Part shown: positions 1,092 to 55,225 of the stretch, in pieces
How the letters are laid out: each line of letters starts with the position of its first letter
Position numbering within the stretch: position 1 is the stretch's first letter
Origin: Lepidodermella squamata
Lineage: Eukaryota; Animalia; Gastrotricha
Direction: 5' to 3'
NCBI GenBank assembly: GCA_047495785.1
Contig: JBLDXI010000015.1
Coordinates: forward strand, 4,030,001 to 4,094,000
Length of the DNA stretch: 64,000 nt
Position numbers and translations under genes: made by a program
The notes under the pieces: model-generated
What the model was told of the DNA's origin: nothing
The model's input: only the letters and a program-made list of their open reading frames with translations
The model's database searches: none

Positions 1092-1900
1092 TTCGACAAG
1101 GTCGAGATCAAAAAGACTGTTGACTAGGTCAGCTCAGAATATTTGCAATATTTCATGTGGGTTTGTTCCTGACAAGTGAGTGACGATGAATGAGTGCTTC
1201 AAATGTTTTTTTCTCATCGATTAAAAAAAAATTACTATTATTACTGATTTCATTTCACTTGCTATTTACCCAGGTCATATTTATTCTACCGAGATTCTAA
1301 TCGATGTTTCGTGTACCAAAAATGATGAAATTTAGGAGGAAACCGAGAATTTGAACTGCATCGTTGGAAAATTAGGATTCAAGCTGTTTACCGTTAGTTC
1401 TTTTACGCTTAAAATCGTCACTTACAACGATATCAGGGTGTAAGGGAATAAGCGAATTGCTAAATACTGCCAGCGTTTTAAAAAGCCCAGCTTAATGACA
1501 TTATTTGAAATGATCGTTTCAAAAAATAACAACATTTAAAAGGGAAAACAAAATCAAACGTTGACGTTTATGAGTGAACGAAACACAGAATTCAAATAAT
1601 GTTGGCCCACACACGGCCTCGAAGCGAAAGAAGTAATAATTGGGGTCACATTGCGGGCGGCGGCGCAGTATAATAAAACGGCGTTAGGGCCGTGCCGCGA
1701 TTTTTTCATTATGAGTCATATTCGCTTTTTGTGTAAAATGCAAACGCGTGCCGAGTGTTTTTTGCTGACGGCTCGCTCGAAAGTGTTTTGAGTCGAGCTT
1801 TCCCGGTATAAGCTGAACAGCGACGCAAAGAACGTTGAAATTCCTCGCATTTTAGCCTGTTATTTATTCAAATTTTAGATTTTCTGATTTGATTATTATC

Positions 1901-3351
1901 ATGGCTGATCAACCTGTAATCGACACGTTAATTTACCTTCCGGAAAGCCCTAACCGCCCGTTGAAAAACGACTCCACTCGAGCGTTTTGTTTGACAATGG
2001 AAATTTCGCTCGAACTCCTGAAAACTTGCCCGCCGAGCTCCAGCTTGATCGATTCCGCTATTTCCAAATGCAGCAATCTACCTAGCAATTTTGAAGATGA
2101 ATTTTTGGTCGAGTCGTTTGATGAAGTCACAAAACCTCGCTGCTACTCCGCATGTTTCAACAAACTTAACGACAACCGTTGCGTCGACTCGATCGATGCG
2201 GTTCAAAGTGTAATTCGCGAAAATCGTAAAAACATTCCTTTCCTCATTTTTCTTTCGCGAAACTGCGGTGGGCAATTTGTTTCGATTGTAATTAGTGGCA
2301 GCGATAATTTCTTCATCGTTGAGTCTGGCCTGGCTTCAATAACAAAAATCAATTCCATCTCAAACTTGGTATTTCGTCTCGGAAAATTGTGGCCGATGTC
2401 CTCGGAGGATTCAACAGATTTGAACATTTTGGCGCTGAAAATGAAGGATGATGACGAGAGCGGCGAAGGAGCAGATGATCTGAAGGCGATCGTCGAGGCT
2501 CTCCGACTAGAAAATGACCGACTTCGAAGCCAACTCGCAATTATAAATCGAACCCTGGAAATCCCGAACAAGGTCTGAGGCGAAAAGCTTTGTCTTCATT
2601 ACCACCGCTCATTTCGATACCAGAAAATGCAGAAAGCCAAAAATTTCGGGAAGACACGTTCTATTGCCCGATTTGCCTTGAAATTCACTCGGAAGAATTT
2701 GTGTTTTTCATTTCTAATTGCCCGCACCGATTTTGTCGCGCCTGCTCGTTGAAATTCGCTCAAACCGCCGTCGGAGAGCGCTTGATTCCAGTTCGTTGTC
2801 CCGTTCAAGAATGCCGAAGTGAAATTGGCGTTTCAGATCTGGAACTAATTCTTCCACCTGATGATCTCGCCCGGTTGATTAGCTTTACGTTGGACCAAGC
2901 GTTGACAGATATGAATTACGTTCGCTGCCCACAGCCAAACTGTCATGGTGTTGTTGAGCTGTTAGCCCCTCGCCAGAAATTTACCTGCCCGATATGCGCC
3001 TATCAAATGTGTACTGATTGCCGTCGTCGTTGGCATTTTGGCTACTCCTGCGATGGGAAAGCTGATTGGCTGGAGGAAGACCGAGCCGCAGCTTGTCTAC
3101 CCCGCCAGCCAGTTGCTGATAACAAAGCTCAATTCCGCGAGTTTTACAATGCCAAGCAGCTTCAAACCTGTCCGAAATGCGGTCAAATTGTCGAGAAAAC
3201 GGAAGGCTGCAACCACATACCTTGCCGATGTGGCTGGGATTTCTGTTACCTTTGTGGCGAATCGATTCAGTTCAGCCGCAACGGGTATTCGAAGCATGCG
3301 TGCCAAGGTCCCGCCGCTTCTGCTGCTTCAATCCGTTCACTCCGTTTCTGA
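1901..3351 (+). CDS. Gene A1: degenerate VTD-like (pseudo-DUB) domain + coiled coil + RBR E3 ligase (RING1-IBR-RING2), split by a -1 frame break at about 2518-2578
   Basis: ORF 1901-2578 aligns by eye with the gene B DUB domain. ORF 2590-3351 has RING1 (CPIC..CPHRFCRAC..CPVQEC), IBR (CPQPNC..CPIC..CTDC..WH..C) and RING2 (CPKC..EGCNHIPCRCGWDFCYLC). The second ORF has no ATG before RING1, so the two ORFs are probably one gene. Confidence 0.8.
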
Positions 3352-3622
3352 TATCACATTTTTGAAAAATCAATTCGCTAATTAATTGCTCAGTAATTTT
3401 TAACGGTTTCATCGATAACCAACAATTATACCCTAATTTTTCTTTCACGTCTTGTGCCATTTTCAGTCTTATATGTGCCAATATCGGCCAAGCCATTCTG
3501 TGCAAAGTTGCCTCAGCTTATCTTAGCATCTTAACAAACCTTACAATTTTACCGATTATGAAATAAAAAATCGCAATATTTTTTCTTAATTTGTAGGATT
3601 ATTAGTCTTTTTTGCTGTTTCG

Positions 3623-5349
3623 ATGGCTAATTTCAGCGGAAGGTTTTCGGGCACTGTGTAAGTTATATTTTTTGCGAAGTTTGAGGTAGTTTATTAGGCA
3701 AAATTAACCGGCAAAATTTCAAACAAGCTTCAGATTTTAGAAATTTTCTGAATTTGTTTTTCAAGCGTGAAAAAATCCGGCGCATTGTAGATCGTTCCAT
3801 GCTCAAATTCCAGAAGGCCTTCAATTTATTAGTAGATTCGATAGTTGGAATATTCTATTATTACTTCTGTTTGACTATAGGAAGAATTTGATTAGCTTCA
3901 ATAGCGAAGAGCGTAAGGAAGAAAAGCTGTATTCAAGCTCGTCTCGACGCACCGCTGAAGTTTTGGAGTTCCCTAGAACTCCCCCAGGCCTGCCAATGAT
4001 TGATCGAGTTGAAGCCGAACGAAGCCAGTACGATGTAAACAGTGAATCCGCTTGCACTCTGATGGCTACAGAAGCGATTCTAAGGTTGCTGAGTGAGGAT
4101 GAAGCCACAGGCAACATGACTCGACCGACTCGACAAATTTTGGAGGAAATTCTTGACACCTGTTCGAACGTCAAATGCGACCATCTAGCTGTTCAAGACC
4201 TCGTAGGCGGTAGCGTTTCTCGCTATTCAAAAGGCTTGAATTTCCACAAGGAAGAGCAACTCCCACTGGAGGATATTCGAAAACTTGCAAAGCTGGTTGC
4301 GAGAGCTGAAGATCGTGGTTCGTTTGCTTTATTGCTCACAAAACCACCTGAATCGATTGCGTTAATCGTCCAATCCGCGACTCGCATCATCGTTTTCGAT
4401 TCGCATCGCCGTCCCCATACTTCAGGCGCTTATTTCGCTGTTGGAAATTCAATGCCGCTGATATTGAAGGAAATTCAATCGATTTGGCCGATCACCGACC
4501 CAGGAATCGGCTACGGAGCGGCTTTACAGTTGGATATGCTTAACACCCTTCAGTTTGCAGTTTTGACGAGAAAGCCGATTCCTCTTGAGCAGCTGCCTGC
4601 GCTTGATCTGTTGCCATTTCTTCATTCTGGCTTGGAGGGTAAAGTTTCGGCGTTGAGTAAGCAGGTCTCCGATCTATCCAGAGAGCTTAAAACTGCTCAG
4701 GTAAACAATTTGACCGCTAACAAGTAAAAATAGGGTTGATTATCAAATTTCCTGAATTTTCCAAAAAATTGCTCAGAATTGAAAACTTTGCCATGATTTT
4801 CAAAAAAATTGAATATATTAGATAAAACGATCATTTCCGAATTCAAACCCATTTTCGTGCTTTTTCTTGCAGTCTCAAATCGTCCAGCTGACGGAACAGA
4901 ATGCTAATATGGTTTCTGAGTTATCGCGATTTTTTACCAGTCTTGTGCGTGTTCAAGCAACATCAGCAGCGAACAATCTCGAAGCGATTAACAAACTCGC
5001 TCAAGATTTCAATTTTCCTCTCAACCGAGAAGTAGTGGCTCCGACGAGTGTCCTGCTGACCCCGACCCCACCGCCAGCTGCCGAGGCACCCATCAGCCGT
5101 TTCAAATGTTGCCAATGCGAGAAGGTCATGTCAAAAGAGTACGTCTTCAGCATGTCGACGTGTCCTCACGAGATGTGCCGCCCTTGTGCTGGTCTATTCA
5201 TCGGCGGGAAAATTCGCGATCGCAGTTATCCGATTTCGTGCCCGATGGCGAAGTGCCGCAAAAAGATGGACGCCGACGATATTGTTCTGGTTTTGACTGA
5301 AGAGCAAATGGCGAAATTCAGCGAACATCAACAACGATTTCAAGTCTGA
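3623..5349 (+). CDS. Gene B1: VTD/herpes-tegument-like deubiquitinase + coiled coil + single RING1-type zinc finger
   Basis: Exons 3623-3657, 3881-4700, 4873-5349 are joined in frame by GT-AG introns. Motifs: RSQY..SACTLMA (Cys codon 4053-4055), LLLTKPPE, FDSH (His 4404-4406), heptad region, CCQC..CPHEMCRPC..CPMAKC. Confidence 0.85.
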
Positions 5350-5477
5350 ATCTTAAAGCTCATCGAACTTCTAATTGAATTGACCTTAAATCAATAATTT
5401 GAAATATAGTGTTCAATATAATCAATTTAGGTCATGCTATAATGATTAGTCTTTAAATAGGAATATTTTGAGATAAA

Positions 5478-7180
5478 ATGGCTTCTCTGCTTAGAAAAAA
5501 TGAACCTTTCCTATGTTTGAAATGCCGTAATATGTCGAGTTTTGAGGACATTTTCGAATCGTCGAATTGCCGGCATCAGTTTTGTCGTAGCTGCGTCTCA
5601 ACCTTTCTACTCGACCATCACCTGCTACGCTGTCCGATTTACCCGCAATGCAAGGCGGAAATGTCGCGCCACGACGCTGCTCTCGTGATCTCGTGATAGA
5701 ATTCTGTACATCGGATTTCACTGGTTTCGAGCTCGAGTTCGCGTCTGACGAACCTGGCCGCGAATCGCCAAGTTTGACACCAGCTGAGCCTGAAGCCCTC
5801 GATTGTGGTATATGTGGTCTGGTAGCCTCGATGGAAGATTTATTCGAAATTTCTACTGTTTGCTCGCATAAGATTTGCCGTGTTTGCTCAGCTTCGTTGC
5901 TGACAAATTCTCCTTATTCAAGTGTAACTAATTGTCTGGTTCCTGGCTGCTTGGTCAAATTTGAGCCGGATCGCGAAGATTTGCTATTCCAGTTTGTTGA
6001 TTTGACGCTGACCCCTCCTCCGGAAACTTTCTCCTGCGAGATTTGCTTGACGACCAAAGACATTTTCGACGTGTTTAAAATTCGCGATTGTCAGCACCAG
6101 ATTTGCCGCGAATGTGCTCGCGATTACATCCGCTCGCTGACTGCCGATATGAAGGAGATGGCGTGTCCTATGCCTTCTTGCAAGGTTAAAAAAAATAGCT
6201 TCATTTTTTTAAATTTTTATCAATTAATTCTTTCATTTCTTCTATAACTAATATATCATAATTTAAATGAATAAAACAAAACTAATAATACCGAAATTAA
6301 TTAATTAACCCCTCCCCCCCTCCAGTGAATACCCTCCAGTGAATACCGGAGGGCTAGGTAATTCTGGACTAAACCATTTCGAGGTTTAGATTCAGTCTCA
6401 ATTCAGAAATTTATGATACCTAAAACTTATCTGCAAAATTTGAAGATTTTACGATTTTGTACCTGATTTTTGGTGATCGGAAACATCTTTTAATAAATTT
6501 GGGCAATTAGCGGGTAATTTTGGAGGCTCATTTGCATATGGATTGGCTTTGTGTGCTTTTAAATAATTTGTATTGAGTTGGGCCAAATTTCGGAAAAATT
6601 GCATCATTTTTTTGAAAAATTGAGATTTTTCGGTACATTCAATACTTTATAATATATTTGAAAATTTAAGGGGGTGCTAACACTGGAAGATGCGGAAATG
6701 GTTGTCCAAGCCGATGAGATGAAGCGCCTTATTGACATGCTGCTTAAAGCCGCTGTCACCGACTGCTTCCATTGCCCGAAGCCAGACTGCCCCGGCCTGG
6801 CTGAGATGGTCGCACCTCGCGTTCTTTTCATCTGCCCAGTTTGCAACTACCACATGTGTACGCAATGCAACGCTGACTGGCATGCGACAGTCACCTGTGA
6901 TGAGTACGCGAAATGGCGCGAAGAAAACGGAGTTGCGGATGCTCGATTCGATGACTACGTCCGCGATTGGAAGGTCCAGGTTTGCCTGAATTGCAGGCAG
7001 GGCGTCGAAAAAACCGAGGGCTGCAACCACATCATTTGCAGTTGTGGAGCTCAGTTTTGGTAAAATAACCTTCTTCAACGTAATAATTCCTTATTTAATA
7101 CTTTTTCTCATTTCAGCTATCTATGCGGAAAGCGTACCCTCAAAGTTGACTGGTCAAAACACGGCAATTGTCAGTTGTAA
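5478..7180 (+). pseudogene. Gene C1: poly-RING RBR E3 ligase, frameshifted near 5690
   Basis: Exons 5478-6184, 6671-7059, 7117-7180 (spliced RING2 ...GAQFCYLCGK). Net 7 nt shorter than C2 at CTCGTGATCTCGTGAT, giving a stop at 5696. Confidence 0.8.
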
Positions 7181-7313
7181 TTATGATAATATTGTTTAGA
7201 AACAGCAACTTGTGAATTATGCTCCGAATTTGAAATAATGCCTGCAAAGTGTCGCATGAATAACTTGACCTTTATCACGGTGAGATGATGAATCAGCAAT
7301 AAAATATTAAGAT

Positions 7314-7440
7314 TTATAAATTTATCATCTCGCTCAGCATTTTCAGACTTGTCAAAATGTATCACGGCGGTCAGCTGAGTTTTGCTTCCTTAACCGAATA
7401 AATACACTTAATAGGAAAGGAGAGGCGGCGCAATATGCGG
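7314..7440 (-). pseudogene. 3' remnant of a Cys-loop channel gene (copy of 24132-24305)
   Basis: Sequence TTTATCATCTCGCTCAGCATTTT...GGAGAGGCGGCGCAATATGCGG matches the M3-M4 end of LGIC-2, with an internal deletion; homology stops abruptly at about 7440. Confidence 0.85.
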
Positions 7441-9018
7441 GTCCCAGAGGCAACGTTTTGCCGGCTCGGATTAGATCGGCAACCACCTCAAGACACCCAT
7501 AATGGTAATCAAATAATTTGCCGGAGTGAGAAGTGGTCAGGTCAGCAATCACCTTGGAGAGCTCGAAGCTCGAACACCCGCCGGTATCTGCCGCGTGGGT
7601 CGCGATTTGCTATCAATTTTGGAACTTTTTTTTCCTTCATACGAAATGGCTTTGAATTGATCATCAAAATCGATATCGCCGTTCTCTTGATACTCAACCT
7701 GGGTCACGAAAGAATGCGTCGAGGTACCTCGGATGAAAGAGGGTTACATCGAAAAGAGACATGTCGCCGTCCGTCGGCGAAATTGTTGAATTTCAATTAA
7801 TTGAAATATTCAAATTCAAATTAATAATTCAAATATTCAAATGATCAAATATTCAAATAATTCAAATTAATTGAATTATTTTGACGGCAAAATAAGATGT
7901 GGTGGCAGGGAGTTGACTATGAACATGAACACGTCGTGGGCGTGGTGACGTAGTCGACCATGGCCGTCGGGTACTGCTGCCTGACCAAGGTCAGCGATGC
8001 CGTCTTCAGACAAACCAGGGATCGGTAGAAAAGAACCATTGCCTATCTGCGAAAATATATATATATATAGTTGGAGCCCAGATTTCCCGTCACCTGATTT
8101 TCCGTCTGACGGGAAATCGCGATATATAAATATTTAGGAGCGACTTGGACCCGTGGAGTGCAATTACATGCAAAACTACCTAGATTTCCCGTCAATTTTG
8201 ATTTCCTGTCAGGATTTTCGTGGAACCGCAGAAGACGGGAAATCGGGCGGGTTCCACACTAGAAAAAATTAACCCCTGATCAGGGGTCAGCTGTTTAAAC
8301 CGTTTTACTGATCAGCATGAAAACGGGACAACCCCTGATAATCGCAGACGCCAGCTGATAATCCATGCCATTTTCATGCTGATCAGCATGACTTTGCTGA
8401 TCAGGGGTCAAAAGTGTGCATTCGCTAATTAAACACGTGTGCATATGCAAATTTGGCTGCATGTTCAATCCAGGCTTGCGTCGGAAGGTCCATATTTTCG
8501 AAAAAGCAAATTATTTCACACGCGAACTCTATTACTTCAGCTGTTAACTCGAATTCTACTTATCAGCGAGTCGCCTTTCAGCCTAAAAACTTGAGGGCCA
8601 CCACTGATATCTGTCTGCCAAGCTAATTGTATTTATAAAGAACTATTTCTTTTTTTCAACTTTTTGTTCCGGTTCTACTTGCTTTGCCTCAATAACAGTA
8701 GTGCTATTTGCCTCTGTTAGTTTTCTCCAATTCGTAAGTTTTCCCCGACTTCAAGTGCTGCCAAATTTCGTTTTTAGTGATTATTTCCTTTTTAAAGTCA
8801 CTTTAAATTCACTTTTCATTCAGGAAGTATAAATTAGTATACTAAACTTTTTTTCCAGTTTTCCCGATCCGAGAATTTGGGCTCAAAGTCCAAATTTTGC
8901 CTTGTAATATTTTCTGAAATAAAAACTTTTTTCCTTGACATTTTCTTTTCTTTTCGACCTTGCGGTTCGGAATTAAATCTAAATTTTATTGGCCCATCCT
9001 TTCTTCTCTTCTTTCTCC

Positions 9019-11166
9019 ATGATCACCGTTTCTAATACGGGTGATCTTCTAATGCGTTTCGACGGTGAAGGCGAAATGCCTGATCCACACAGTGTGTCGC
9101 CTACTGCCCCGTCCGCAACGCCGCAGCTTGCTGAGTTCCTGATCCAGGCTGGTCCTCAGCCTAGTACTAGTGTCCCCAAAAAAAATAAAGGTGCAAGCGC
9201 TATGAAGTTAGGCTCGCAGGTTGACTCGACGTCCCTGTTAACAAAGAGCGGGATCGGTTCAAGTTTAGGGGTTTCAAGCGCTTCTCAGTTAGACCCGAGA
9301 GTTGACTCGACGTCCTCTGCGGCTGGGCTCGGTTCAAGCTTTAAGGGGCCCTCTCCCACCTCAGGTGAAACTGTTAAACGGAAGTCTGACAGCTCACCTG
9401 ACAGTAAGGTACGCAAGATAGCTTCAACAGTGAGGCTATCTGCATCTTCCAACGAGGAGTCCGATGCTGTCGTCGAGAACCAGGAGATGGATGCCGAGGA
9501 TCAGGAAGAAGGTCAGCTCGTCGACCCAATCGGTGATCTGAGTAGCAGCGACCCCGATACCGACGGCGACGATGACGAGGATGACGATGAAGACGAAGGT
9601 GAAATGGAGTGGCAAACTGTCAATGACTCGTCCAAGTCCAGGTTCCGTATCGTGATAGTCGACGGAATATCGCCGATTTTCTCGACCATCTACATGTGCC
9701 TGAGAGAGCTGAATCGCGTGGCCCCAGACGTGAAACATGTTCGCGTCTGGGTGTATCCCCGTGGTGCGTTTGGCATGCTCTGCAAGGACTTGGCCAGCGT
9801 CACCGCGGTCCTCAGCAAGGCCAACTGGCCTGAGGACGCCTTTGGTGGGAGAGCCCGACCCCATAGGCCATCCAAGGTAGAAGTGGATGAGGCACCAGGT
9901 GCCAAGGCGGTGTTAGAAGCGCAAGTTCCAAGCGGCGAGCAAGCGGCACGCATGGAAGCTCGAGCCAAGCATTTGGACGAAGACCGGCGTAAAGCCGTGT
10001 GCGTCAACTTCTTCGACGGGGCCTCTGTTGACGACATCCTCGACGGTTGGGAAGACGTCGTAGATCAGGTCTGGCCTATCAAAGGCACTACGACGTGCTT
10101 CGGGGTTCTCTGCAAATCGGTGCGTCTCTGCGAGGAACTCGTGGCCAGAGGGCGCGATTTCCTTGGCCTCCGCATAGCCGCCAGGGTGTGGCGTTCCGAC
10201 CCAGAGGTAGAGATATGTGGCAGGTGTCTCAACATCGGCCATCTCACTGGGAACTGTCGAGCGGCTCTCCGGTGTTCTACCTGTGGGCAAGTAGGCCATG
10301 AAGGCAGTAGTTGCAAACAGCAGGCGAAGAGGTGCGCCAGATGCGATGGCAATCACTCCGGCTTCTACCGAGGTTGCCTTATCGTGAAGAACGAGGCCGA
10401 GCGTCGCCGCAAAGCCGATGAAGCCGAAGCCCGAGCCATTCGTAACCGAAGTACCGGAGATGCCAACCTCCGTAATGGCATGTCGTTTGCAGGAGCAGCC
10501 GGAGGTGGATACGCACAACCACCACCAGTACCACCACCTGTACCACCACCTGTACCACCACCTGTACCGCAACCAGCACCACCACCTGTACCGCAACCAG
10601 GACCACCAGGATTCAATGGAACCCGGCCCTACCAGAGACCGGCGTCTCACAACAACCACCAGAACGAGTCAACGCTAGCACCGGACGAACGAAGCGAGCT
10701 AACCACTCTACGGTTTAGCGTAGCCGCACAGGCGGCTGAAATTGATCGGCTAAACAGTTCTGTTGAGCGGTTGACGGCTGCCCTTGAGAAGTTACTCAAC
10801 CAAGGTCCTTCGATGCCAGCAATAGTACCACAACCGGTCGCACAACCGATTCCGCTCCAGGAAATGGAAGATCGTCTATTTGCAAGGATAATGGATGCGT
10901 TCAGCCGATGCAAGAACGCAGGCGATATGCGGGCCCAAGCATTCCCGCAGCAAGTCATTGCTCGCCCAACCATGTTGCCTTCGTCGAACATGGTTGTCCA
11001 TTCTCCTTCGCACTACAGCGTCGAGGGCCAGAATGCAGTACCTTTTCAATGGGACGCTGGCCAGCTTGGTCAAGCCATGGTGATCCAGCCGCAGTTCAGC
11101 CAACAGCCTACTTTCGTTCAGCGACCATTCTCTGGAGTGCCCCTTCAATACTCCAATAATGCCTAG
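9019..11166 (+). CDS. LINE ORF1 (gag-like nucleic-acid-binding protein)
   Basis: Three CCHC-type knuckles (CGRCLNIGHLTGNC, CSTCGQVGHEGSSC, CARCDGNHSGFYRGC), acidic tract, Pro-rich repeat, coiled coil. First ATG is at 9019. Confidence 0.9.
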   Translation: MITVSNTGDLLMRFDGEGEMPDPHSVSPTAPSATPQLAEFLIQAGPQPSTSVPKKNKGASAMKLGSQVDSTSLLTKSGIGSSLGVSSASQLDPRVDSTSSAAGLGSSFKGPSPTSGETVKRKSDSSPDSKVRKIASTVRLSASSNEESDAVVENQEMDAEDQEEGQLVDPIGDLSSSDPDTDGDDDEDDDEDEGEMEWQTVNDSSKSRFRIVIVDGISPIFSTIYMCLRELNRVAPDVKHVRVWVYPRGAFGMLCKDLASVTAVLSKANWPEDAFGGRARPHRPSKVEVDEAPGAKAVLEAQVPSGEQAARMEARAKHLDEDRRKAVCVNFFDGASVDDILDGWEDVVDQVWPIKGTTTCFGVLCKSVRLCEELVARGRDFLGLRIAARVWRSDPEVEICGRCLNIGHLTGNCRAALRCSTCGQVGHEGSSCKQQAKRCARCDGNHSGFYRGCLIVKNEAERRRKADEAEARAIRNRSTGDANLRNGMSFAGAAGGGYAQPPPVPPPVPPPVPPPVPQPAPPPVPQPGPPGFNGTRPYQRPASHNNHQNESTLAPDERSELTTLRFSVAAQAAEIDRLNSSVERLTAALEKLLNQGPSMPAIVPQPVAQPIPLQEMEDRLFARIMDAFSRCKNAGDMRAQAFPQQVIARPTMLPSSNMVVHSPSHYSVEGQNAVPFQWDAGQLGQAMVIQPQFSQQPTFVQRPFSGVPLQYSNNA
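10518..10610 (+). repeat. Coding minisatellite (CCACCACCTGTA)n encoding PPPV repeats in LINE ORF1
   Basis: Directly visible 12-bp unit repeated with variants. Confidence 0.9.
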
Positions 11167-14137
11167 TCTTAGTACACTCAGAAAAAGTAGAATCATCGTA
11201 ATCCAGTGGAATTGCCAGGGCATCAAGGCGAAAAGAGCTGAACTTCTCCACATTATAGAGCAATATGGGCCTCATGTCATTCTTTTAAACGAGACTTGGC
11301 TAAAGTTCGGCGAGAAATTCGACCTCCCTGGCTACACTGCTTTCCGCGTAGATAGATTAGGAGCGTACGGGCTAAACTGTGGCGGCGTCGCAATCTTTAT
11401 TAGTCAGTCAAAGCCAATACTAGATTGTGCCGAAGTAAAGTTTGCGCCAGCCTCTAGAGGCGAGTGGCTTGCAGTTGAGCTGCTAGTAGGCGAAGTCAAC
11501 GCCTCAGCGAGACTTACGATTGCCACAGGGTACAATCCTTCACATAGCCCATTAGACACATCTTTCGTTAGAGAGGTCTTGAGTGATCCGTCTACAAACT
11601 CGATCTTCGCTGGCGACTTGAACGCCTGGGCGGAAGAGTTAGGTTGCGCGGACTGGAACGTTCAGCGAACGGGAAGCGGGGGGCTTCTTTCGGAGTACCT
11701 AAAATCCTCCTCTGTGGTTTTGCATAGCTCGCCAACTGCTCCCACGCGGTTCAGGGAAGGTCACGTGTCGCGAGTCTTAGATGTATGGCTCAGTTCACTG
11801 GCTGCTGATAAGTGTTTCAACCGTGCGCCTGCTGTTCTAGATTGCTATCGAAGCGATCATGCCGTCACTATCGCGGGCCTCACACTCGTGCTCCCGGAGC
11901 GGAACTCCTGTTCACCGTTGGCCAATGCCTCGGTGCCGGCAGCCGCTCGGGACGTTCGTTTCGATTTTTTGAACGCCGACTGGCCTGAATACCAGAGAGT
12001 ATGCGCGGAGAAGATAGCGCCAGTCGTTCGCCCAAAAGGCGGGGACTCGGTCAGGGCGCTGGACGTCTTCGCCGCAAGTATCTCCGAGGTAATAATGAGT
12101 AGCGCGAAAACCACGCTAGCTCGTGTGCCGGTGGCTAAATTGCCTAAGGTACGACTCAGCCATGCTGTCAAGCGGGCTATCGAGGCCAGGAATCGGTGTG
12201 ACAAGAAAAATCGAAATGAACGCTCTGCTGCGTCTAAAGCGGCTTTAAATGCTGCGACACGGCAGGTGGCGCGAGAGGTCGCGATAGAGGCGGATAAAAA
12301 ATGTCGGCGGCGGTTGAACCACATAGCACAGCTTTTTCAGGCGCAGCAAGCTGCCCTGGCGTGGCAACACGCACAGCGTATTTTGGGGGAATCGAAAGGC
12401 TCGCAACGCGTGATCCCCACCCTTAACTTAGCGAACGGGACGAAGGTGACGTCAAACCCAGAGAAGGCGAGGGTTTTTGCTGAAAATTGGGCGCCGACGT
12501 TCCAGGCCGCGCCTCGTAGCTCACCGCATCAGGCGGACCAAGAATTTTGGGACTCGATCGACCAAGCATGCGAGGTAGACGAGGAGCTCAATGCCTCTCT
12601 AACAATACCAGATAAATTAGACGTCATGATTTCTAGGAACGCCTTCAACTCCCAGCTTGCCCGGTTGAAGCTTAAAGCTCCCGGGGAAGATGGGATCCTC
12701 AACCCGTTGATTAAGAACGCTCCCCCACCTCTCCTAGAGGCTATCCTTCTCCTGTTTAATTTATCTTTGAACGCCGGCTATCTGCCAGCTGCTTGGAAAA
12801 TTGGAATTGTGGTACCGGTGCCCAAGGCGGGGAAATCGCAACGGTCCCTGGATGGGTATAGGCCAGTTTCCTTAACCAGCTGCATGGCAAAGCTTCTGGA
12901 GGCCGTCGTGGCTGGGTTCATTCTTGAGTTCTGCTTGCGGAACAAGATTTTGACGCCAAGCCAAGTCGGGTTCCAGAAGTGGCTGTCAGTCTTGGATGCC
13001 ATCCTCAGACTTATGCATGACATCACAGACGGATTCGTGCATAAAGATGAGTTGGGCAGACCTGATAAATTAACTACTGTTGTGGCGTTCCTGGACTACA
13101 AGGCAGCTTTCGACTCCATTTGGCACAACGGTTTACGAATGGTCCTTAAAGGCCTTGGCCTACCCGTAGCCGTTGTGCGGTGGATTTCGGACTTCTTACG
13201 CGACAGGCGTATGAAAGTAAGGGTAGGAGACAGTTTCAGTGAAGACGTCGAGGTAGCTTGCGGAGTCCCTCAGGGATCTCCTTTATCCCCGATACTCTTC
13301 ATCATCTACACTTCTTCGTCCCTCCCAGCGGAGGTCGACAAGGACGACGCGGTAAAAAGAACTGCCGCGGCGGCATACGCCGACGACCAGGCTGTGTGGG
13401 CTACAGGGCGACCGGCCCCACTCGTCACTGCTCGTGTCCAAGCGGCACTTCGGGTCACAGAACGCTGGTCTCAGCGCTGGAGACTTGACCTGAACCCGAG
13501 GAAGTGCGAGTGGGTCGCATTCGGCGCCAACGTCAACCTCACAGCTGGTCAACTCCAGTTGGGAGGCATCTGCCTGCCTAGAGTGCAACAGTTCAAGTAC
13601 CTAGGTGTTTGGCTGTCCAAGCACTTGTGCTGGACGCCGCACTTAGAGCACGTCAGCGCACGAGCCCTTCCTCGTATTTTCGCCCTTTTTCGTGGCAGGG
13701 TAAAGACTCACCCCACCTTGGGTCTCCTGTTCTACAAGAGCGTCATCCGGCCGCTGTTGGAATTCGGTGCCCCGGCGTTCGCCAACTCGAAGCCACAGTT
13801 CATCGAAAAACTGGCGGTCTTAGAACGGCGGGCCCTTAAGATCATCTTGGGTCTCCCACGCCGGTGCCCGAATGAGATCTATCAGCGGCGGTTGAAGGCC
13901 ACTTTTCGGGAGTTCCAGCTGATCGAAGAACGTTTGTCCACCCTATCGTTCAACTGCTTCAACAGGGCGCTTGAAGCAGGTAGCGTGCTAGGCGAAATAG
14001 TTCGTCAGAGTCGCGATAGGCCCGTGCCGGAGAGTAAATCCCCAGTGCGTTTCTTTCTTGACCATCTATTGGGAGCTGGGCCTCTACCTTCGGTTCGATC
14101 GTCCTTTGATCGACTTCCAGCGATCCTAGCAGTTTAG
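11159..14137 (+). CDS. LINE ORF2: APE endonuclease + reverse transcriptase
   Basis: QWNCQG, LNETWL, AGDLNA, SDH (endonuclease); APGEDG, YRPVSLTS, FLDYKAAFDSIWH, GVPQGSPLSP, YADD, YLGV (RT). Overlaps ORF1 by 8 nt. Confidence 0.97.
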   Translation: MPSLSTLRKSRIIVIQWNCQGIKAKRAELLHIIEQYGPHVILLNETWLKFGEKFDLPGYTAFRVDRLGAYGLNCGGVAIFISQSKPILDCAEVKFAPASRGEWLAVELLVGEVNASARLTIATGYNPSHSPLDTSFVREVLSDPSTNSIFAGDLNAWAEELGCADWNVQRTGSGGLLSEYLKSSSVVLHSSPTAPTRFREGHVSRVLDVWLSSLAADKCFNRAPAVLDCYRSDHAVTIAGLTLVLPERNSCSPLANASVPAAARDVRFDFLNADWPEYQRVCAEKIAPVVRPKGGDSVRALDVFAASISEVIMSSAKTTLARVPVAKLPKVRLSHAVKRAIEARNRCDKKNRNERSAASKAALNAATRQVAREVAIEADKKCRRRLNHIAQLFQAQQAALAWQHAQRILGESKGSQRVIPTLNLANGTKVTSNPEKARVFAENWAPTFQAAPRSSPHQADQEFWDSIDQACEVDEELNASLTIPDKLDVMISRNAFNSQLARLKLKAPGEDGILNPLIKNAPPPLLEAILLLFNLSLNAGYLPAAWKIGIVVPVPKAGKSQRSLDGYRPVSLTSCMAKLLEAVVAGFILEFCLRNKILTPSQVGFQKWLSVLDAILRLMHDITDGFVHKDELGRPDKLTTVVAFLDYKAAFDSIWHNGLRMVLKGLGLPVAVVRWISDFLRDRRMKVRVGDSFSEDVEVACGVPQGSPLSPILFIIYTSSSLPAEVDKDDAVKRTAAAAYADDQAVWATGRPAPLVTARVQAALRVTERWSQRWRLDLNPRKCEWVAFGANVNLTAGQLQLGGICLPRVQQFKYLGVWLSKHLCWTPHLEHVSARALPRIFALFRGRVKTHPTLGLLFYKSVIRPLLEFGAPAFANSKPQFIEKLAVLERRALKIILGLPRRCPNEIYQRRLKATFREFQLIEERLSTLSFNCFNRALEAGSVLGEIVRQSRDRPVPESKSPVRFFLDHLLGAGPLPSVRSSFDRLPAILAV

Positions 14138-15529: not shown

Positions 15530-17680
15530 ATTATTTAAGGAATTCTTCCCGGTGTTGAGGGCAGAACCGAGAATTCTGCCCGCTGAAAATGCCCGAGGGC
15601 GTAGCGGAGCGCAGCGAAGCGAAGCCCGAGGGTATTTTCAAGGGCTGAATTCGAGGTTTTGCCCGAGACACAAGGGAAGAGTTCCTGTTCCTTCCCAGTT
15701 GGTTATTTTCGTTAATCCGACACTCGGACGAGTGAAAATGGGGAATGGTGTATAGTGCGTATGAAAGATGACCGTTGTTAATAACGATAATAAGAAATCC
15801 AGCTTAAAATTTGTAGCAAATTTTTTTTTTGAATTTTTTTTGTTCGTTGTTCATTTCCTTGTTTTATTATCAATTGAATATTGCGAATTTCCGTCGAATT
15901 TTCAATGGAGATCACTTTTGATATTGGCGACCTGGGCCTCGGTGCTCTCGCTGACGGCTCCGTGGAAGTGAAACAGCGCGAAGAATCCGATCCAATTCGA
16001 CTTCTCGAACGAGAACTTGATGCTGATATCGAAGAAGAAGAATCCGATGAAGAGGGTGATACGTCGGAGTTCATTCAAGAAGTCGAAAATTTCGTGGCTG
16101 GTTTTGAAGCAAACGGCACAGCTCAGAAAACCAAGCAGCACTGGAGCCGATTTGTCGCATTTGTCGAGCAGCGATTCCACATTTCGGAGCAACTATTAGT
16201 TGAACTTACGGTCAAGGATATGGATCTCTATGTCGCTCTTTTTCTCAAGCAGTTGACGAAGACTGATGGTAGCGCGATGGAGCCGACAACGATTCGAGGC
16301 ATTTATTCCTCCATCATTCGCCATCTCCGCGATGTGACGAAGAACGAAATCAACTTCACCATGGCGAGAGTCGATTTCTTCTATAGCATGAAAATGCTGA
16401 AATCCAAGTTTGTCGAATCTAAGCGTGCTGGAAAGGGAAATAAAGCCCGAGCATCTGAATGCCTAGAACGAGAAGATATTGATAAAATGCGTGAGGCGAA
16501 AACGCTGACTGATGACACGCCAATCGGTTTGATCACGATGCTGTGGCTGGTTTTCACCGTGTATTTCGGTCTTCGTGGCCGTGATGAACATCTACAAATG
16601 AAGTAGGTTGTTGGATTGCCATTGAAAAATTGTTAAATTGGCCGTTTTCAGGTTTGGTGATGTCCAGCTAAAAACCGAATCTGGAGGTCGCAGGTATCTC
16701 GAATTCAACGAGCGACAGACTAAAACCAGGAATGGCGAATCAACCCACTCAAAACTGGCACCACGAGCATACGAGAACGGTGGCTTTTTCTGCCCGGTTC
16801 GATTGTTCCTTATTTTTTGTGCAAAACGACCGGGAAAGTTTTCGCGCCCGAGTGACCCAATGTATGTTGGTTGCCTGACCCGATTTCGACCCGACGGCCT
16901 CTTCTACAAATGCCAACATTTGGGCAAGAACCCCCTTGGATCGCTCCTCAAGGACGCCGCTGTCGGTGCTGGTATTACCAAACGAATCACGAACCACTCG
17001 GCTCGAAAGTTTCTCGTCTCAACCCTCTCTGAACTCGGTGTCGATTCTCGAAAGATCATCCAGATTACTGGTCATGCATCGGTCGATTCTCTGAACAGTT
17101 ACCACAAACTCAACACCTCTGAACGACGAAGTATCAGCGACAAACTGGCTGTCGGTTTCGGTGATGGACAATCAGCTGCAGTTTCGGGTGTGTCTGCACA
17201 AGAGATCAAGCCAACCGAAGGATTGGTGGTGGCCGAGTCGCATTTCTCGCAAACGCTGCTGCTTCGAAACGTCGAAAATGACCCGCGCGATGAGCCACCC
17301 GTAAAGCAAGCTAAACCCATGCCGATCTTCAATTTCTCGAATTGCTCCGTCGTTATTAACAATTAATCCGGCCCAAACACTTGTTTTAAAGTTTAAACAT
17401 TCTAATAAAGGTTATTCACTTGTTCACTCGTTTGGTCAGAGTCTGAAGGTTGTAGTAAAGGGACTGGGAACGGAAATTGAAGTTGTGCAACATTATTTCA
17501 GGTGAGAGGTTTTCCCGAATTTTCGAGAGCATCAATTGATTTTCGAAAATAAAAAATCCACCCTAATCGTTTGAGCGGGCAGAAACAGCGGGCAGAAACA
17601 TCGGGCAGAATCACTTTTTCCGTCTAGGCAAAAAATAACCAACTGGGCAGGAACATCGAGTTTTCGCTCGATATAGTCAA
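15530..17680 (+). mobile_element. Crypton-type tyrosine-recombinase DNA transposon (boundaries approximate)
   Basis: Recombinase gene flanked by a 24-bp inverted repeat (15687-15710 and 17631-17654) and a left-side CCCGAGGG...CCCGAGGG motif. Confidence 0.7.
15905..17366 (+). CDS. Crypton tyrosine recombinase (DUF3504-like), 470 aa after splicing
   Basis: Intron 16603-16651 (GT..AG, 49 nt) joins the two ORFs in frame. Catalytic set GLRGRDEH, TKT, CPV, HSAR, TGH, SLNSY; C-terminal FNFSNCSVVIN motif. Confidence 0.9.
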
Positions 17681-18065: not shown

Positions 18066-18663
18066 GCTTGATGAGAAGGTCGATTTGCTCACAATCTTTA
18101 TCGACGAAAATGGTAATTGGGTTGGAAAATTTGCGCGAAAGATTTCAGCATTGCCTCAACGTTTTCACCACGTTCATCACTCAGCAATTTCAAAGTTTCG
18201 TCGAGAAGCTGATTTGTTTTTTCATCGGATTTCCTGTGAAATAATTAGGTAGGTTTTATTCGCTAAATTTTCCAGAATTTCTTCAATTTTTCAAACAATT
18301 TCAATACTTTTACAATATTTTTTCCGAACATTCTGGGCGAAATAAATGAACGTATGCGGGCAGTGCGGGCGCGGGTAAGCCGGGTCGAATAAAAAAACAC
18401 CCTTGGGATTGCATAGCGGACGATGACGGACTAATAAAGCGGCGTTTGGGCCGTGCCGCGATTTGTTGCAGTATGATTCATATTCGCTTTTTGTGTAATG
18501 CAAACGCGTGCCGAGTGTTTATTGCTGACGGCTCGGTCAAAAGTGCTTTTTTGAGTCGCGTTTTCCCGGTATACGCTGATCAGCGGCGCAAAGAACGTTG
18601 AAATTTCTTGATTTTTAGCCTATTAGTTATTCAATTTTTATATCATCTGCTTTTCGTGTTATC

Positions 18664-19150
18664 ATGGCTGATCAAGCTGTTATCGAGACGTTAATTTACC
18701 TTCCCGAAAGCCCTAACCGCCCGTTGAAAAGCGACTCGACTCGAGCGTTTTGTTTGACAATGGAAATATCGCTGCAACTGCTGAAAAATTTACCTGCCCG
18801 ATTTTTGCCTATCAAATGTGTACTGATTGCCGTCGTCGTTGGCATTTTGGCTACTCGTGCGATGGGAAAGCTGATTGGCTTGAAGAAGATCGAGCCACAG
18901 CCAGCCAGTTGTTGACAACGATCGTTGAGCTTCGAAGCTCAGTTCCGTCAGTTTTACGCTGTCAAGCAGCTTCAAACTTGTCCGAAATGCGGTCAAAAAA
19001 CGTCGAAAAACGTCGAAAATGCGTCGAAAAAACGGACGGCTGCAACCACATGCACTGGCGATGCGGCTGGGATTTCTGCTACCTTCAGCCGTTTCAGTTC
19101 AGCCGTAACGGCTATTCGAAACACGCGCGCCAAGGTCCCGACGCTTCTGC
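18664..19150 (+). pseudogene. Gene A2: deleted, frameshifted copy of gene A
   Basis: MADQAVIETLIYLPESPNRP start joined directly to the IBR second half (about 950 bp equivalent to 2025-2976 missing); RING2 damaged. Upstream 18350-18660 is homologous to 1600-1900. Confidence 0.9.
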
Positions 19151-19570
19151 CACTTCGCTTTGTTATCTTAGCATCTTAATAACCCTTACAATTTTAACGA
19201 TAGGTAATCAAGTAAAAAATTTCAATTTTTCAATTTATAGAAAAATTATTGACAGTTCTTGTTTGTTTTGCTGGCTCATATCGGCGGAAGACTCACAGAC
19301 GCTGTGTAAGTTTTATATTTGGGTATCTTGGCTGATGCGTGGAATAACTTGGCCGCGTGGCTGATGAACCGAACGATGAATCATAGACTATGATTCATGG
19401 GTCATCAGCTTTCAACATTGAAGCTTTATAGCTTTATAGCATATCTGGTGTGATGGCGTTATCGCCAAAAACGCCAAAATGAACGATGGCAACACGCGTT
19501 CATTCATATAAAAAAAAAGTAAAAATCCGAGCCAATTTTTTTATGACCATATCAAAGACGCGCATGTTAT

Positions 19571-19681
19571 GCGATAACGATTTTAGATTTGATCATTACT
19601 AAACTCTGCGATAACGATTTTAGATTTGATCATTACTTAACTCTGCGATAACGATTTTAGATTTGATCATTACTAAACTCT
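19571..19681. repeat. Tandem repeat, 3 x 37 bp
   Basis: GCGATAACGATTTTAGATTTGATCATTACT(A/T)AACTCT x3, head to tail, no spacers. Confidence 0.95.
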
Positions 19682-20086
19682 CTGAACTCGGGACCGCACT
19701 TTAAATAAGCGACACAATTATAACCTAATTTATAATTGTTCTTCCACACCTTTGTGCCTTCTGCAACCACTTACTGTAGCGTTGGGCAATTTAAAAAAAA
19801 AAAATGCTCGATTTCTCCCGCAAGGCCTACTGATCTCTGTTTTGATTGCAGAATGGTATATGGAAAATGCGCTTGGTGAAATTAGGAATTTTTTATTATT
19901 TAAAATTTGACCGATCTCGGTATGACAGAAATACATTGAAATTCCAGGGGTAAAGTTGACGAGCCCGTCGCCTCGTCTTCATATATGTGAGTTACACATT
20001 TTATAATCGAATTTTACTGAATATAAAATATAAAATTACGATGCATTTTTTTAGATTTTTAGTTGTATCCAATTTTTGCTGTTGCG

Positions 20087-22053
20087 ATGGCTCGTTCCAG
20101 CGGAAAAATGACAGACACTGTGTAAGTTTTGTATTCTGATGAAGCAAAGGCTAAAGCAAAGAAAAGCATGAAAAGCAACAATATATATCAAAATTTCACC
20201 CGAGGTTACAAAACTCAAGTTGTGAATTTTAAGAATTTAATTTAATTTTGGGCGTGTACGATTTGGTGTTTTCACGAATTACCTGCAATTAAATTCCGCT
20301 AACTGTAAAAGAAAAATAAATTAATATTTATAAGAATTTTGACGACTTTGACGACTTTGACGATGACAATAAATTAAAATAATTGGGCCAGAACTACTAT
20401 AATCGATCAGTTAGATTTACTAGACCTATTGAGTCCATAAATTCGCTTGTTTTTTATGATCACAGGAAGAATCTCATGAACTTGAATGGCGAAGAGCGTA
20501 AGGAAGAAAAACATTCTTCAATCTCGTCACGGCACACTGTTGCAGTTTCGGAATTCACCAGAGCTCCCCCTGGCCTGCCAATGATTGATAGAATCGAAGT
20601 CGATCGAAGCCAGTACGATGTCAACAGCGAATCCGCGTGCACTTTGATGGCTACAGAAGCGATACTAAGGTTGCTGAGTGTCGATGAAGCCACAAGGAAC
20701 ATGCCTCGACCGACAACTCAAATTCTGGAGGAAATTCTTGACACCTGTTCGAACGTCAAATGCGACCATCTAGCTGTTCAAGACCTCGTAGGCGGCGCTG
20801 TTTCTCGCTATTCAAAAGGCTTGAATTTTGGCAAGGAGGAGCAACTTCCCCTGGAAGACATTCGAAAACTCGCCAAGCTAGCTGAAGATCGTTGTCCTTT
20901 TGCGTTATTGCTCACAAAACCACCTGAATCGATTGCGTTAATCGTCCAATCCGCGACTCGCATCATCGTTTTCGATTCGCATCGCCGTCCCCATACTTCA
21001 GGCGCTTATTTCGCTGTTGGAAATTCAATGCCGCTGATATTAAAGGAAATTCAATCGATTTGGCCGATCACCGACCCAGGAATAGGCTATGGATCAACTC
21101 TACAGTTCGATATGCTGAACACCCTTCAATTCGCAGTTTTGACGAGGAAGCCGATTGCCCTTGAGCAGCTGCCTGATCTTGATCTACTGCCGGTTCTTCA
21201 TGCTGGTTTAGAGAGTAAAGTTTCGGCATTGAACAGGCAGGTCTCAGAGCTATCCAAAGAGCTACAAACTGCTCAGGTAAAAAGTTTGACAACTAACAAG
21301 AAAATTAAGGTTTTGCAAATTTCCTGAATTTTTCAATGAATTTGCGTATAATTGAAAAGAACAAGAACTTTCTTTATGGCCCAAACCAGAGTATTTTTCC
21401 GAGGCTCGAGATCATTGGGACGCTCCCCTTTCTCTCACCTTCAGATCCTTTTTTTATGAAGGTGAATGGGACTGCGGAAAGTGCTCGCCAAATTTTGGGG
21501 AAAATTTTGAATTTTTTCTTCGATTGAAATATTGTTTTAATTAGTTCAAAAAGTGACTGCCTGCTTTTTATTGCAGTCTCAAATCGTCCAGCTCCAGAAC
21601 CAGAATGCGTCTATGGTTTCTGATTTATCGCGATTTTTCACCAATCTTTTGCGTGTTCAAGCAACATCAGCAGCGAACAATCTCGAAGCGATTAACAAAC
21701 TCGCTCAAGATTTCAATTTTCCTCTCAACCGAGAAGTAGTGGTTCGGACGAGTGTCCTGCTGACACCAACCCCACCGCCAGCTGCCGAGGCACCCATCAG
21801 CCGTTTCAAATGTTGCCAATGCGAGAAGGTGATGTCAAAAGAGTACGTCTTCAGCATGTCGACGTGCCCCCACGAGATGTGCCGCCTTTGTGCTGGTCTA
21901 TTCATCGGCGGGAAAATTCTCGATCGCAGTTACCCCATTCTGTGCCCGGTGGCGAAGTGCCGCAAAAAGATGGAAGTCGACGATATTCTTCTGGTTTTGA
22001 CTGAAGAGCAAATGGCGAAATTCAGCGAACATCAACAACGATATGGCATCTGA
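20087..22053 (+). CDS. Gene B2: VTD-like deubiquitinase + coiled coil + RING1-type finger (intact)
   Basis: Exons 20087-20121, 20466-21276, 21577-22053 in frame; SQY, SAC and FDSH motifs present. Confidence 0.85.
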
Positions 22054-22192
22054 AAAATGCCATCATTGGACTTCAAAATGAATATTTGAAACTTGACCTT
22101 GAATGAATAATTGAAATAGTGATAAATATAATCAATTTAGGTCATGCTAATGACTATAGACTATAGTTATTCTATAGGTATTTGGATATAAA

Positions 22193-24016
22193 ATGGCTTC
22201 TCGGCATACAAGAAACCAACCTTTCCTATGTTTGAAGTGCCGTAAAATGTCGAATTTCGAGGACATTTTCGAATCTTCAAATTGCCGCCATTTGTTTTGC
22301 CGTAGTTGCGTCTCGACTTATCTACTCAGCCACCACCTGCTGCGCTGTCCGATTTACCCGCAGTGCAAGGCAGAAATTTTGCGCCACGACGCTGCTCTTG
22401 TGATTGGCGACGATAATCTAGAATTCTGTACATCGGATTTGACTGGCTTCGATGCGTACGAGTTCGCGTTTGACGAACGTGGCCGCGAATCGCCAATATT
22501 CACACCGTTCAAGCTTGAAGTCTTCGATTGCTGTGTATGTGGTCTGATAGCTTCTATGGAAGATTTGCTCGAAACTTCCACTATTTGCTCACATAAGATT
22601 TGCGGCGTTTGTTCAGCTTCGCTCGAGATTTTCCCCTATTCAAGTGGAACTAGTTGCCCGGTTCCTGGCTGCTTCGAGGCCGAATCGGGCCAAGGTCGAG
22701 CCGAATTCGAGCCGGATCCGGAAGATTTGCTGCTTCGAGTTGCTGGTTTGACGTTGACGCCTCCTCCGGAAACTTTCTCCTGTCAGATTTGCTTGACGGA
22801 CAAATCCATTTACGACGTATTTAAAATTCGCGATTGTCAGCACCAGCTTTGCCGCGAATGTGCTCGTGAATACTTCCGCAGCTTAGCGGACGACATGAAG
22901 AAGTTGGCGTGTCCTATGCCTTCTTGCGAGGTTGTAAATTTATTTTTCAAATGAACTTATGTCGAATTATATTAATGATTGATTTTTGCATTTTATCCAA
23001 TAATTATTACTAAAATCAATAAATCAATTGTTTTCGGTCAAAAAACCGTAGGGTAGGGTAATTCTGGTCCAGGTCATGATTTTTAGGTTTAAAAATCAGT
23101 CAAAATTCATAAATTTTCGATACTTGGCACAACGGTGTGTAAAGTGATTTCCGATTTATCTGCAAAATTTGATGATTTTACGATTTTTACCTGATTTTTG
23201 GTGATCGAAAAAGTTTGAATAAAGTTATGCTTAAGGGAGTAATTTTGCAAAGCTTTGGCTTGTGAGTTTTTAGCTTTTATTGAGTTCAATAATTAAATTT
23301 CGAAAAATTTTAATTTTTGTTTCAAAATTATATTTTGGATTTTTTTTACATTCTTACTTATAATTTTAAAATTTAAGGGGGTGCTAACGCTTCAAGACGC
23401 CGAAACTGTGGTTGATGCTGATGAAATGAAGCGTCTCACTGACATGCTGCTGAAAGCCGCTGTCACCGACTGCTTCCATTGCCCAAAGCCAGACTGTCCC
23501 GGGTTGGCTGAGATGGTGCCACCTCGCTTCATTTTCATCTGCCCAGTTTGCGACCACCGCATGTGTACCCGGTGCAATACTGACTGGCATGCGACAGTCA
23601 CGTGTGAGGAGTACGCGAGGTGGCGCGAAGAAAACGGAGCCGCCGATCAGCGGTTAAATGACTACGTCCGCCGTCAGAAAGTCCAGGTTTGCCCGGATTG
23701 CAGGCAGGGTGTCGAGAAAACCGAGGGCTGCAACCACATGACATGCCGCTGCGGGGCTCATTTTTGGTCAGTTTCTTATTGAATTGTCAAAAATCACTCA
23801 ACTTGAAAATATCTTCTTAGTTACCTATGCGGCCAACGGTTCCAGAGAGCGGGTTGGGAACCCCATGGCTCTTGTCCTTTGTTCAGTGCTACTTCTGATG
23901 ACCTAACATCATGATGTATTGCTTTTTCCAGTTATCTATGCGGGAAGCGGACTTATAATACTGACTGGCCAAAACACGGCAATTGCCAGATGTTTGATGA
24001 TGTGAACAGTGATTAG
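22193..24016 (+). CDS. Gene C2: RBR E3 ligase with three RING1-type fingers, IBR and RING2; two alternative terminal exons
   Basis: Exons 22193-22930 and 23378-23766, then either 23821-23914 or 23932-24016. Catalytic GCNH intact. Confidence 0.88.
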
Positions 24017-24131
24017 AAACAGCACCCTGCGAATTATGCTCTTAATTATTTGAAAAATGCCTGCGCATGAATTATTTGACCTAATATCGCGCTTACCGGT
24101 GAGATGAATAGCAATAAAAGATTCGATTTTT

Positions 24132-38847: not shown

Positions 38848-38981
38848 AATTTCTTGAGCTGATTAATTCGAACGATGATTGATTGATTGCTTTCAGTGCC
38901 GTAATATCCAATACCCATTCTTATATCCAAGAATCAAATGAAAAAATTATTTAATCTCTTCATCATTTAGGCTTTTTATAA

Positions 38982-47434: not shown

Positions 47435-47558
47435 AATGTTTCGATATGATAAATTCGAACGCTGATTCATCGCTTGCTTTGATCTCATCCAATACCCATA
47501 CATTATATATCCAAGAATCAATTGAAAATTACTGTCTTCATCATTTAGGCTTTTATAA

Positions 47559-55085: not shown

Positions 55086-55225
55086 GGCATGTCGTTTTTG
55101 CCTGCCCTTGCCCTGATAAATTCGAACGATGATTGATCGCTTGCTTTATTAGTATCCGATACCATTGCCTTGAATATCCAAGAAGCAAATGAAAAAATGA
55201 CTTCTCTGAATACCTTAGGCTTTTA

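Follow-up and report, generated by a model that had tools for sequence, protein, structure and literature searches.

Deubiquitinases (DUBs) of the viral-tegument-like (VTD) family have been recognised outside the herpesviruses only since 2022. Both inactive VTD domains in insects and the fusion of a VTD domain to a RING1-IBR-RING2 (RBR) ligase in the Agaricomycetes have already been described (Erven et al., 2022; PMC9741609), the fusion being exemplified by PIIN_06337 of Serendipita indica and LOC18815922 of Serpula lacrymans (PMC9741609), and the coupling of VTD to RBR has so far been reported only for Agaricomycete fungi. The present study concerns a stretch of 64,000 nucleotides (nt) from Lepidodermella squamata (contig JBLDXI010000015.1, positions 4,030,001 to 4,094,000), hereafter the window, in which a gene designated A, composed of an N-terminal domain (N-domain), a coiled coil and an RBR region, stands next to a VTD-bearing gene designated B. 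An earlier note on this DNA had proposed that the N-domain of A is a catalytically dead copy of the DUB domain of B, fused to a full RBR ligase.

We consider, with a probability of about 0.6, that gene A would be an old, intron-less paralogue within an array of VTD-RBR loci, the front ~180 residues of which would represent the remnant of a VTD domain that has been stripped of its catalytic and invariant residues. Similar to the Agaricomycete fusions, which were compared by their description (PMC9741609), the B-type loci of the window couple a VTD of the Wc-VTD1/fungal/protist subfamily to an RBR-type E3 ligase. In contrast to these fusions, the window is animal-like and holds a multi-copy tandem array with pseudogenes, its family possesses a coiled coil and extra RING1-like modules, the VTD open reading frame (ORF) of the B-type loci stops ~130-145 nt before the RBR ORF, and the domain of gene A is devoid of all catalytic residues. 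The inactive VTDs (iVTDs) of insects, such as Drosophila CG32436 and CG4669 and others, share with A the loss of active-site residue(s) and are presumably non-catalytic; unlike A, they are recognisable from their sequences, fall within the Helitron-like branch, are often present several times in one protein, and are not accompanied by an RBR (PMC9741609). What is new in the present locus is that its host looks like an animal, that the family has been amplified in tandem and has a coiled coil and additional RING1-like modules, and that one paralogue bears a VTD-like domain which is beyond sequence recognition.

The features of genes A and B that are required for the comparison are as follows, B1 denoting the B-type copy adjacent to A and residues of B being counted from the Met at 3996. 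RINGa denotes the RING1-like module directly after the coiled coil.

1901 to 2578, + strand: first ORF of gene A, from the ATG at 1901 to the stop codon at 2576-2578, 225 amino acids (aa), with the N-domain at residues ~1-180 and a leucine zipper at ~190-222.
2518 to 3351, + strand: RBR ORF of gene A, in the other frame and with no introns, consisting of a linker, RING1 (~2665-2784), IBR (~2884-3051) and RING2 with the GCNH catalytic Cys (~3160-3264).
3996 to 4700, + strand: B1 exon encoding the intact VTD and the beginning of the coiled coil (Cys20 at 4053-4055, Asp135 at 4398-4400, His137 at 4404-4406).
4873 to 5349, + strand: B1 exon 2, with the remaining coiled coil, a linker, RINGa and a stop codon at its end.
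5478 to 6187, + strand: B1 "MAS..." RING-repeat/RING1 exon, beginning at a conserved ATG ~130 nt past the stop.
6671 to 7180, + strand: B1 IBR-RING2 exon (6671-7060) and, after an intron, a short last exon.

No match was obtained in Pfam for the N-domain of either A or B. In the N-domains of five B copies in the window, the motifs SQY, SESAC, DH, KPPES and FDSHxRPH are invariant, and a profile prepared from these five copies alone matched PDB 8ADB/8ADC, the Wc-VTD1 deubiquitinase. When 18 database homologues were added, many of which are small UBA-plus-domain proteins, the profile matched Wc-VTD1 (8ADB) over its full length with E=2.2e-23, a far better fit than that to the Helitron VTD 8ADD (0.042). 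The AlphaFold model of the N-domain of B, which was built with the family alignment, reached a predicted local distance difference test (pLDDT) score of 85.4 and a predicted template modelling (pTM) score of 0.86, and its best six PDB matches in Foldseek were all VTD (8ADC/8ADB at 4e-10 to 9e-9, 2J7Q at 1e-6 and 8ADD at 3e-6), with YopT/AvrPphB-like proteases ranking next, as described in PMC9741609. Cys20, Asp135 and His137 are invariant in the five window copies, Asp135 and His137 are present in 23/23 aligned sequences, and Cys20 and Asp135-x-His137 align with the SACT Cys and D-x-H motifs of Wc-VTD1. This K6-specific DUB of Waddlia chondrophila (8ADB/8ADC) is the closest solved structure to the domain of B (Foldseek 4e-10, template modelling (TM) score 0.65); the triad of Cys and Asp-x-His is common to both, and they also align beyond the IWP motif, a C-terminal helix included. 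Wc-VTD1 differs in being bacterial and effector-like and in having neither a coiled coil nor an RBR. Because of the profile match, the confident model and the retention of the catalytic residues, the N-domain of B is regarded as a genuine VTD-family DUB domain of the Wc-VTD1/fungal/protist branch, in agreement with its previous assignment to a DUB family, and it is apparently active as predicted from these residues. The proposal that an active paralogue lies next door to A fits the VTD of B1, which is intact, but not its RING region, the exon of which is frame-broken near 5691 by a 7-nt gap relative to the second B-type copy, B2.

The closest database relatives of the VTD domain in the window are small UBA-plus-VTD proteins of about 220-300 aa (P0001-P0019, loci L004-L028) from metagenomes and one EukProt protist, in which SQY, SACT, TKPPET and FDSHSRPQ are invariant. 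A metagenome scan with the VTD profile recovered 25 distant VTD loci, with an adjacent RBR or A-like domain in 0/25.

Regarding gene A, every string quoted in the earlier note was found when gene A (1901-2578) and gene B (3888-4727) were translated, and the coordinates of A were correct. The first ORF contains zero His in its 225 residues. Ala28 stands opposite the catalytic Cys20 of B while Cys30 of A (1988-1990) is 2 residues off, and E-S-G (2321-2329) replaces the D-S-H of B in every alignment, as had been reported. Since His is entirely absent, activity of the N-domain of gene A as a Cys/His protease is excluded, irrespective of where the domain came from. The part of the proposal that describes a dead domain is thus upheld, whereas its identity with the DUB domain of B is only suggested, by a p of ~0.01, the order of secondary structures and an insignificant top-three Foldseek match, as described below.

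The alignment of A by hhalign to the profile of the five window B copies provided 122 collinear columns, in which PFLIFLSR/SFALLLTK, FFIVESG/IIVFDSH and NSISNLVFRLGKLWP/NSMPLILKEIQSIWP (A/B) were paired in exactly the register proposed by the earlier note; this comparison of hidden Markov models, which had been suggested as a check, therefore returned the expected register, but at P=0.01 and a probability of 4%. In shuffle controls, the score of the real A sequence was reached by 2/120 shuffles with hhalign (p ~0.017), and the real sequence ranked 22/2001 with HMMER using both profiles (p ~0.011). When the N-domain of A was compared with the whole window in six frames by tblastn, the three best non-self matches were B-type VTD copies in the same register (E=0.6-0.9). 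The overall identity of the two N-domains is ~17%, the spacing from the Cys to the acidic residue is 111 in A vs 115 in B, and a WP pair is located at residues 164-165 in both. The single-sequence AlphaFold model of A was poor (pLDDT 43.5). Its residues 92-180 (pLDDT 50-67) exhibited the order helix, four strands, helix, strand (H-E-E-E-E-H-E), and the same order was found at residues 95-192 of the B model except for one extra helix in B. In a Foldseek search with this A model, the deubiquitinase M48 of murine cytomegalovirus (2J7Q), a VTD, ranked 3 and 14 of 350,542 chains and had the highest probability among the top matches, and herpesvirus large-tegument N-termini recurred among the top 40 in BFVD.

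The remainder of gene A has a clearer relationship. RING1 of A is closest to RINGa of B (E ~1e-12, 34-37% identity), the IBR-RING2 regions of A and B match with E ~1e-30 to 1e-32 and 35-39% identity, and the linker and RINGa of B2 align to 2554-2877 of A. The order of modules, namely N-domain, coiled coil, RING1, IBR and RING2, is common to A and B, and A is intron-less where B-type genes have introns. Gene A is an unambiguous paralogue of B across its C-terminal 60%. An RBR is also present at the B-type loci, and A is not special in this respect. A coiled coil after both N-domains, as previously noted, was confirmed by the inspection of heptad repeats; in A it is a leucine zipper of four heptads with L194, L201, L208 and I215 at d and V198, N205, L212 and L219 at a. 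A search with the RBR of A revealed P0020 as its sole database relative, and a distant one. P0020 (L001 10001-11260) is a protein of 419 aa that has an N-terminal region free of His as well as a coiled coil and an RBR, and is encoded on a 56-kb metagenome contig next to genes for an SNF2 helicase and a Cpn60-like protein.

A number of results weigh against a VTD origin of the N-domain of A. BLASTP between the two N-domains aligned only a 17-aa piece, NS..LWP/IWP, at E=1.1, and the hhalign probability against VTD profiles was <5%. The aligned stretch of A shrank as the VTD profile was broadened, and with the broader profiles only 23-29 columns around NSISNLVFRLGKLWP stayed aligned (P=0.07-0.08). 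None of the tests of this domain against VTD was conventionally significant. A phmmer search of 1.84 billion representative proteins with the N-domain of A found zero relatives, and conservation cannot be shown; in the PDB sequences, phmmer returned noise only, the best being an importin at E=0.28. The VTD invariants, namely the Gln, the in-register Cys, His63, KPPE and Asp-x-His-x-Arg-Pro, are all gone from A, and the catalytic Cys and Asp-x-His by which members of the family are recognised are among them, a loss that is expected for a pseudo-enzyme, yet removes the diagnostic residues. The match of 2J7Q to the low-confidence A model had an E-value of 0.044 and a TM-score of 0.19, none of the matches was significant, and RuvC-like and other alpha/beta folds scored equally in the fold searches. 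The N-terminus of P0020 is non-VTD and unrelated to that of A, which makes an RBR ancestor without a VTD conceivable.

These sub-significant scores, the lack of database homologues, the missing invariants and the different N-terminus of P0020 are what would be expected if the N-domain of A were an unrelated domain, or one specific to its lineage, placed ahead of a coiled-coil-RBR gene, with the motif matches arising from chance and a shared alpha/beta hydrophobic pattern; the Agaricomycete RBR gene, moreover, is older than its acquisition of a VTD (PMC9741609). We nevertheless regard this origin as rather unlikely, in view of the agreement among partly independent hints, i.e., p ~0.01 in the expected register, the near-equal spacing, the order of secondary structures and the enrichment of VTDs among the top fold matches, and in view of the collinearity of the remaining gene with B-type genes. 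Because the weak hints from the sequence and model agree in their direction, gene A is otherwise collinear with B and the spacing is nearly equal, the N-domain of A is judged likely to descend from a VTD. The pseudo-DUB claim for gene A may reasonably be treated as a hypothesis on weak statistics.

The second ORF of gene A matched IBR (1.7e-18), IBR_1 (4.4e-9) and zf-C3HC4 (1.9e-5) in Pfam, no zinc ligand is missing and the catalytic Cys of RING2 (GCNH) is present; it is predicted to encode an RBR E3 ligase with the complete RING1-IBR-RING2 arrangement. The previously claimed fusion to a full RBR was therefore correct with respect to the completeness of the RBR, but not with respect to continuity, because the RBR ORF lies in a reading frame other than that of the N-domain/coiled-coil ORF. 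There is no ATG in the RBR frame, and no in-phase pair of a GT/GC donor and an AG acceptor joins the two ORFs; the alignment to B indicated that no intron is expected between them. An intron of 51 nt from GT(2573) to AG(2623) was considered and rejected, as it leaves the wrong frame; GT-AG introns in the window measure ~50-170 nt. With the RBR frame open from 2518 onwards and the other one open as far as 2575, a single break of frame must be located in the following zone.

2518 to 2578, + strand: zone of the gene A frame break, in which both frames are open.

The frame break in gene A appears to have arisen either from an inactivation that is very recent or from an error of one base in the assembly. 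The chance of an open frame is ~4e-6 for the first ORF and ~3e-6 for the RBR ORF, which suggests that each was kept open by selection until recently; with the RBR zinc ligands and the GCNH Cys also retained, both parts may have been under selection for most of their history. No orthologue was found, an exact look-up of five window proteins also being without a match in the collection, and the sole paralogue, A', is decayed. A' arose by the duplication of the A-B unit at 1671-7440, which recurs at 18432-24304 with a nucleotide identity of about 78-88% and comprises the following genes.

18664 to 19160, + strand: A', the duplicate of gene A, a pseudogene that has lost the stretch matching 2025-2976 by deletion and in which what is left of the RBR is degenerate.
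20581 to 23900, + strand: B2, the most intact B-type unit, with the VTD at 20581-21306, the coiled coil and RINGa at 21577-22053, the MAS/RING ORF at 22193-22954 and IBR-RING2 at 23378-23767.

The frame break and the decay of A' fit a gene on its way out and are a further burden on the reading of A as a selected pseudo-enzyme. Gene A may now simply be a pseudogene, the break being real and both the pseudo-domain and the RBR being without a present function, and we hold this to be a serious possibility, albeit short of even odds. It accords with the frame break within 2518-2578, with the lack of an in-frame canonical splice and of an ATG for the RBR frame, with the deletion and decay of A', and with the breakage of other family members nearby (the 7-nt frameshift in B1 and in-frame stops in units 4 and 6). 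Apart from the one 7-nt gap, the indels by which the coding parts of B1 and B2 differ have lengths divisible by 3, and because of this the assembly does not look error-prone. On the other hand, both ORFs are fully open and the RBR zinc ligands are intact, and any inactivation must for this reason have been very recent; a single-base assembly error is possible, and the 225-aa protein of N-domain and zipper could still be made alone.

If the break is an assembly error, A would be an intact single gene for a pseudo-VTD-zipper-RBR ligase, the dead domain of which would bind ubiquitin or substrates and direct the ligase. The open ORFs and intact RBR motifs, the restriction of the break to a 61-nt interval that is open in both frames, and the precedent of VTD-RBR fusions in fungi (PMC9741609) are in line with such a gene. 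It is, however, a doubtful alternative given that the coding parts of the assembly present no independent sign of one-base errors, and the ubiquitin-contact residues of Wc-VTD1 were not reliably mappable onto A.

Returning to gene A as an old paralogue carrying a VTD remnant, the following sequence of events may be considered. An intron-less copy, the RING1 and IBR-RING2 of which are ~35% identical to the B-type modules, would have had its VTD domain worn down until all catalytic and family-invariant residues were lost. The domain would have had a non-catalytic role. It may have bound or targeted on behalf of its own RBR or, by means of the leucine zipper of four heptads, have acted as a partner for those B-type proteins that contain a coiled coil. 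The roles of a ubiquitin reader, decoy or heterodimer partner put forward in the earlier note are reasonable as putative functions. Pseudo-DUB partners of active DUBs are represented by the MPN- subunits paired with BRCC36 or Rpn11; A would share with these the concept of a dead paralogue working with an active one, in a different fold and family. A more ambitious scenario, which we consider a long shot, is that an animal lineage domesticated and amplified cassettes of a protist/fungal-type (K6-type) VTD and an RBR ligase as a fast-evolving tandem array, and that the DUB of one old retro-copied member was turned into a selected non-catalytic ubiquitin- or partner-binding module, zipper-paired with active paralogues, to form a regulatory trio of DUB, pseudo-DUB and E3 that has not yet been described for the VTD family. 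A genome with active VTD and RBR loci beside a diverged, catalytically impossible paralogue would represent a natural system for examining the purpose of VTD-RBR coupling and the non-catalytic re-use of a DUB fold.

A firmer result, and one of arguably greater use, is the array of B-type units, in which a Wc-VTD1-like VTD subfamily is linked to RBR ligases in an animal-like genome. A B-type unit was defined as a VTD-coiled coil-RINGa ORF followed by a RING-repeat/RBR ORF, and six such units are arranged in tandem on the + strand (3996-63999), with aa identities of 63-91% among their VTD domains. The window carries a tandem birth-and-death array, each locus of which provides a VTD-type cysteine deubiquitinase, a coiled coil and a RING1-like module paired with an RBR ligase; the array is regarded as one of birth and death because units 4 and 6 contain in-frame stops and B1 has the 7-nt frameshift. 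Besides B1 and B2, the array comprises four more units.

34355 to 63999, + strand: unit 3 (34355-41670), unit 4 (45913-48735), unit 5 (53260-57451) and unit 6 (60034-63999).

In every B-type unit, the VTD/RINGa ORF closes with a stop, and the conserved ATG (MAS.../MAT...) of the RBR ORF is located ~130-145 nt downstream.

5349-5478, 22053-22193, 38838-38982 and 55085-55226, + strand: stop-to-ATG gaps of B-type units.

No splice donor was found at the stop between the VTD/RINGa ORF and the RBR ORF of B2. The two ORFs may belong to separate genes that lie close together and are possibly co-transcribed, or may be joined by an unrecognised splice. In units 3 and 5, the module that follows the coiled coil has multiplied within the RBR gene, the long ORFs at 38982-40262 (426 aa) and 55226-56842 (538 aa) being built of repeated RING1-like modules (C-x2-C...C-x-H...CP-x3-C plus a helix).

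Several other genes and mobile elements are present in the window, which looks animal by its Cys-loop channel genes and a Crypton element. A human origin was rejected in view of the compact introns (~50-170 nt), the arrays of divergent, intron-less Cys-loop channels, the Crypton element and a VTD-RBR family that is not known from human. Scans of the window for Rfam families and tRNAs gave no match. An apparently intact non-long-terminal-repeat (non-LTR) retrotransposon occupies 8989-14137 on the + strand; its ORF1 (725 aa) contains CCHC knuckles and a proline-rich tract, and its ORF2 (992 aa), which overlaps ORF1, encodes an APE endonuclease and a reverse transcriptase. The GC content of this element is ~55% vs ~42% around it. 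A Crypton-like tyrosine recombinase (DUF3504 and Phage_integrase) is encoded in two ORFs at 15881-17366 (+), between both copies of the A-B duplication, and a reverse transcriptase-only fragment of another non-LTR element, with a 568-aa ORF, lies at 51345-53051 (+) and abuts the upstream end of unit 5. Divergent, intron-less paralogues of Cys-loop ligand-gated channels are interleaved with the VTD/RBR array on the - strand, at 24132-25298, 28274-29413, 31292-32434 and 44004-44783 (Neur_chan_LBD 1e-18 to 1e-21), the copy at 44004-44783 being a 5'-truncated fragment.
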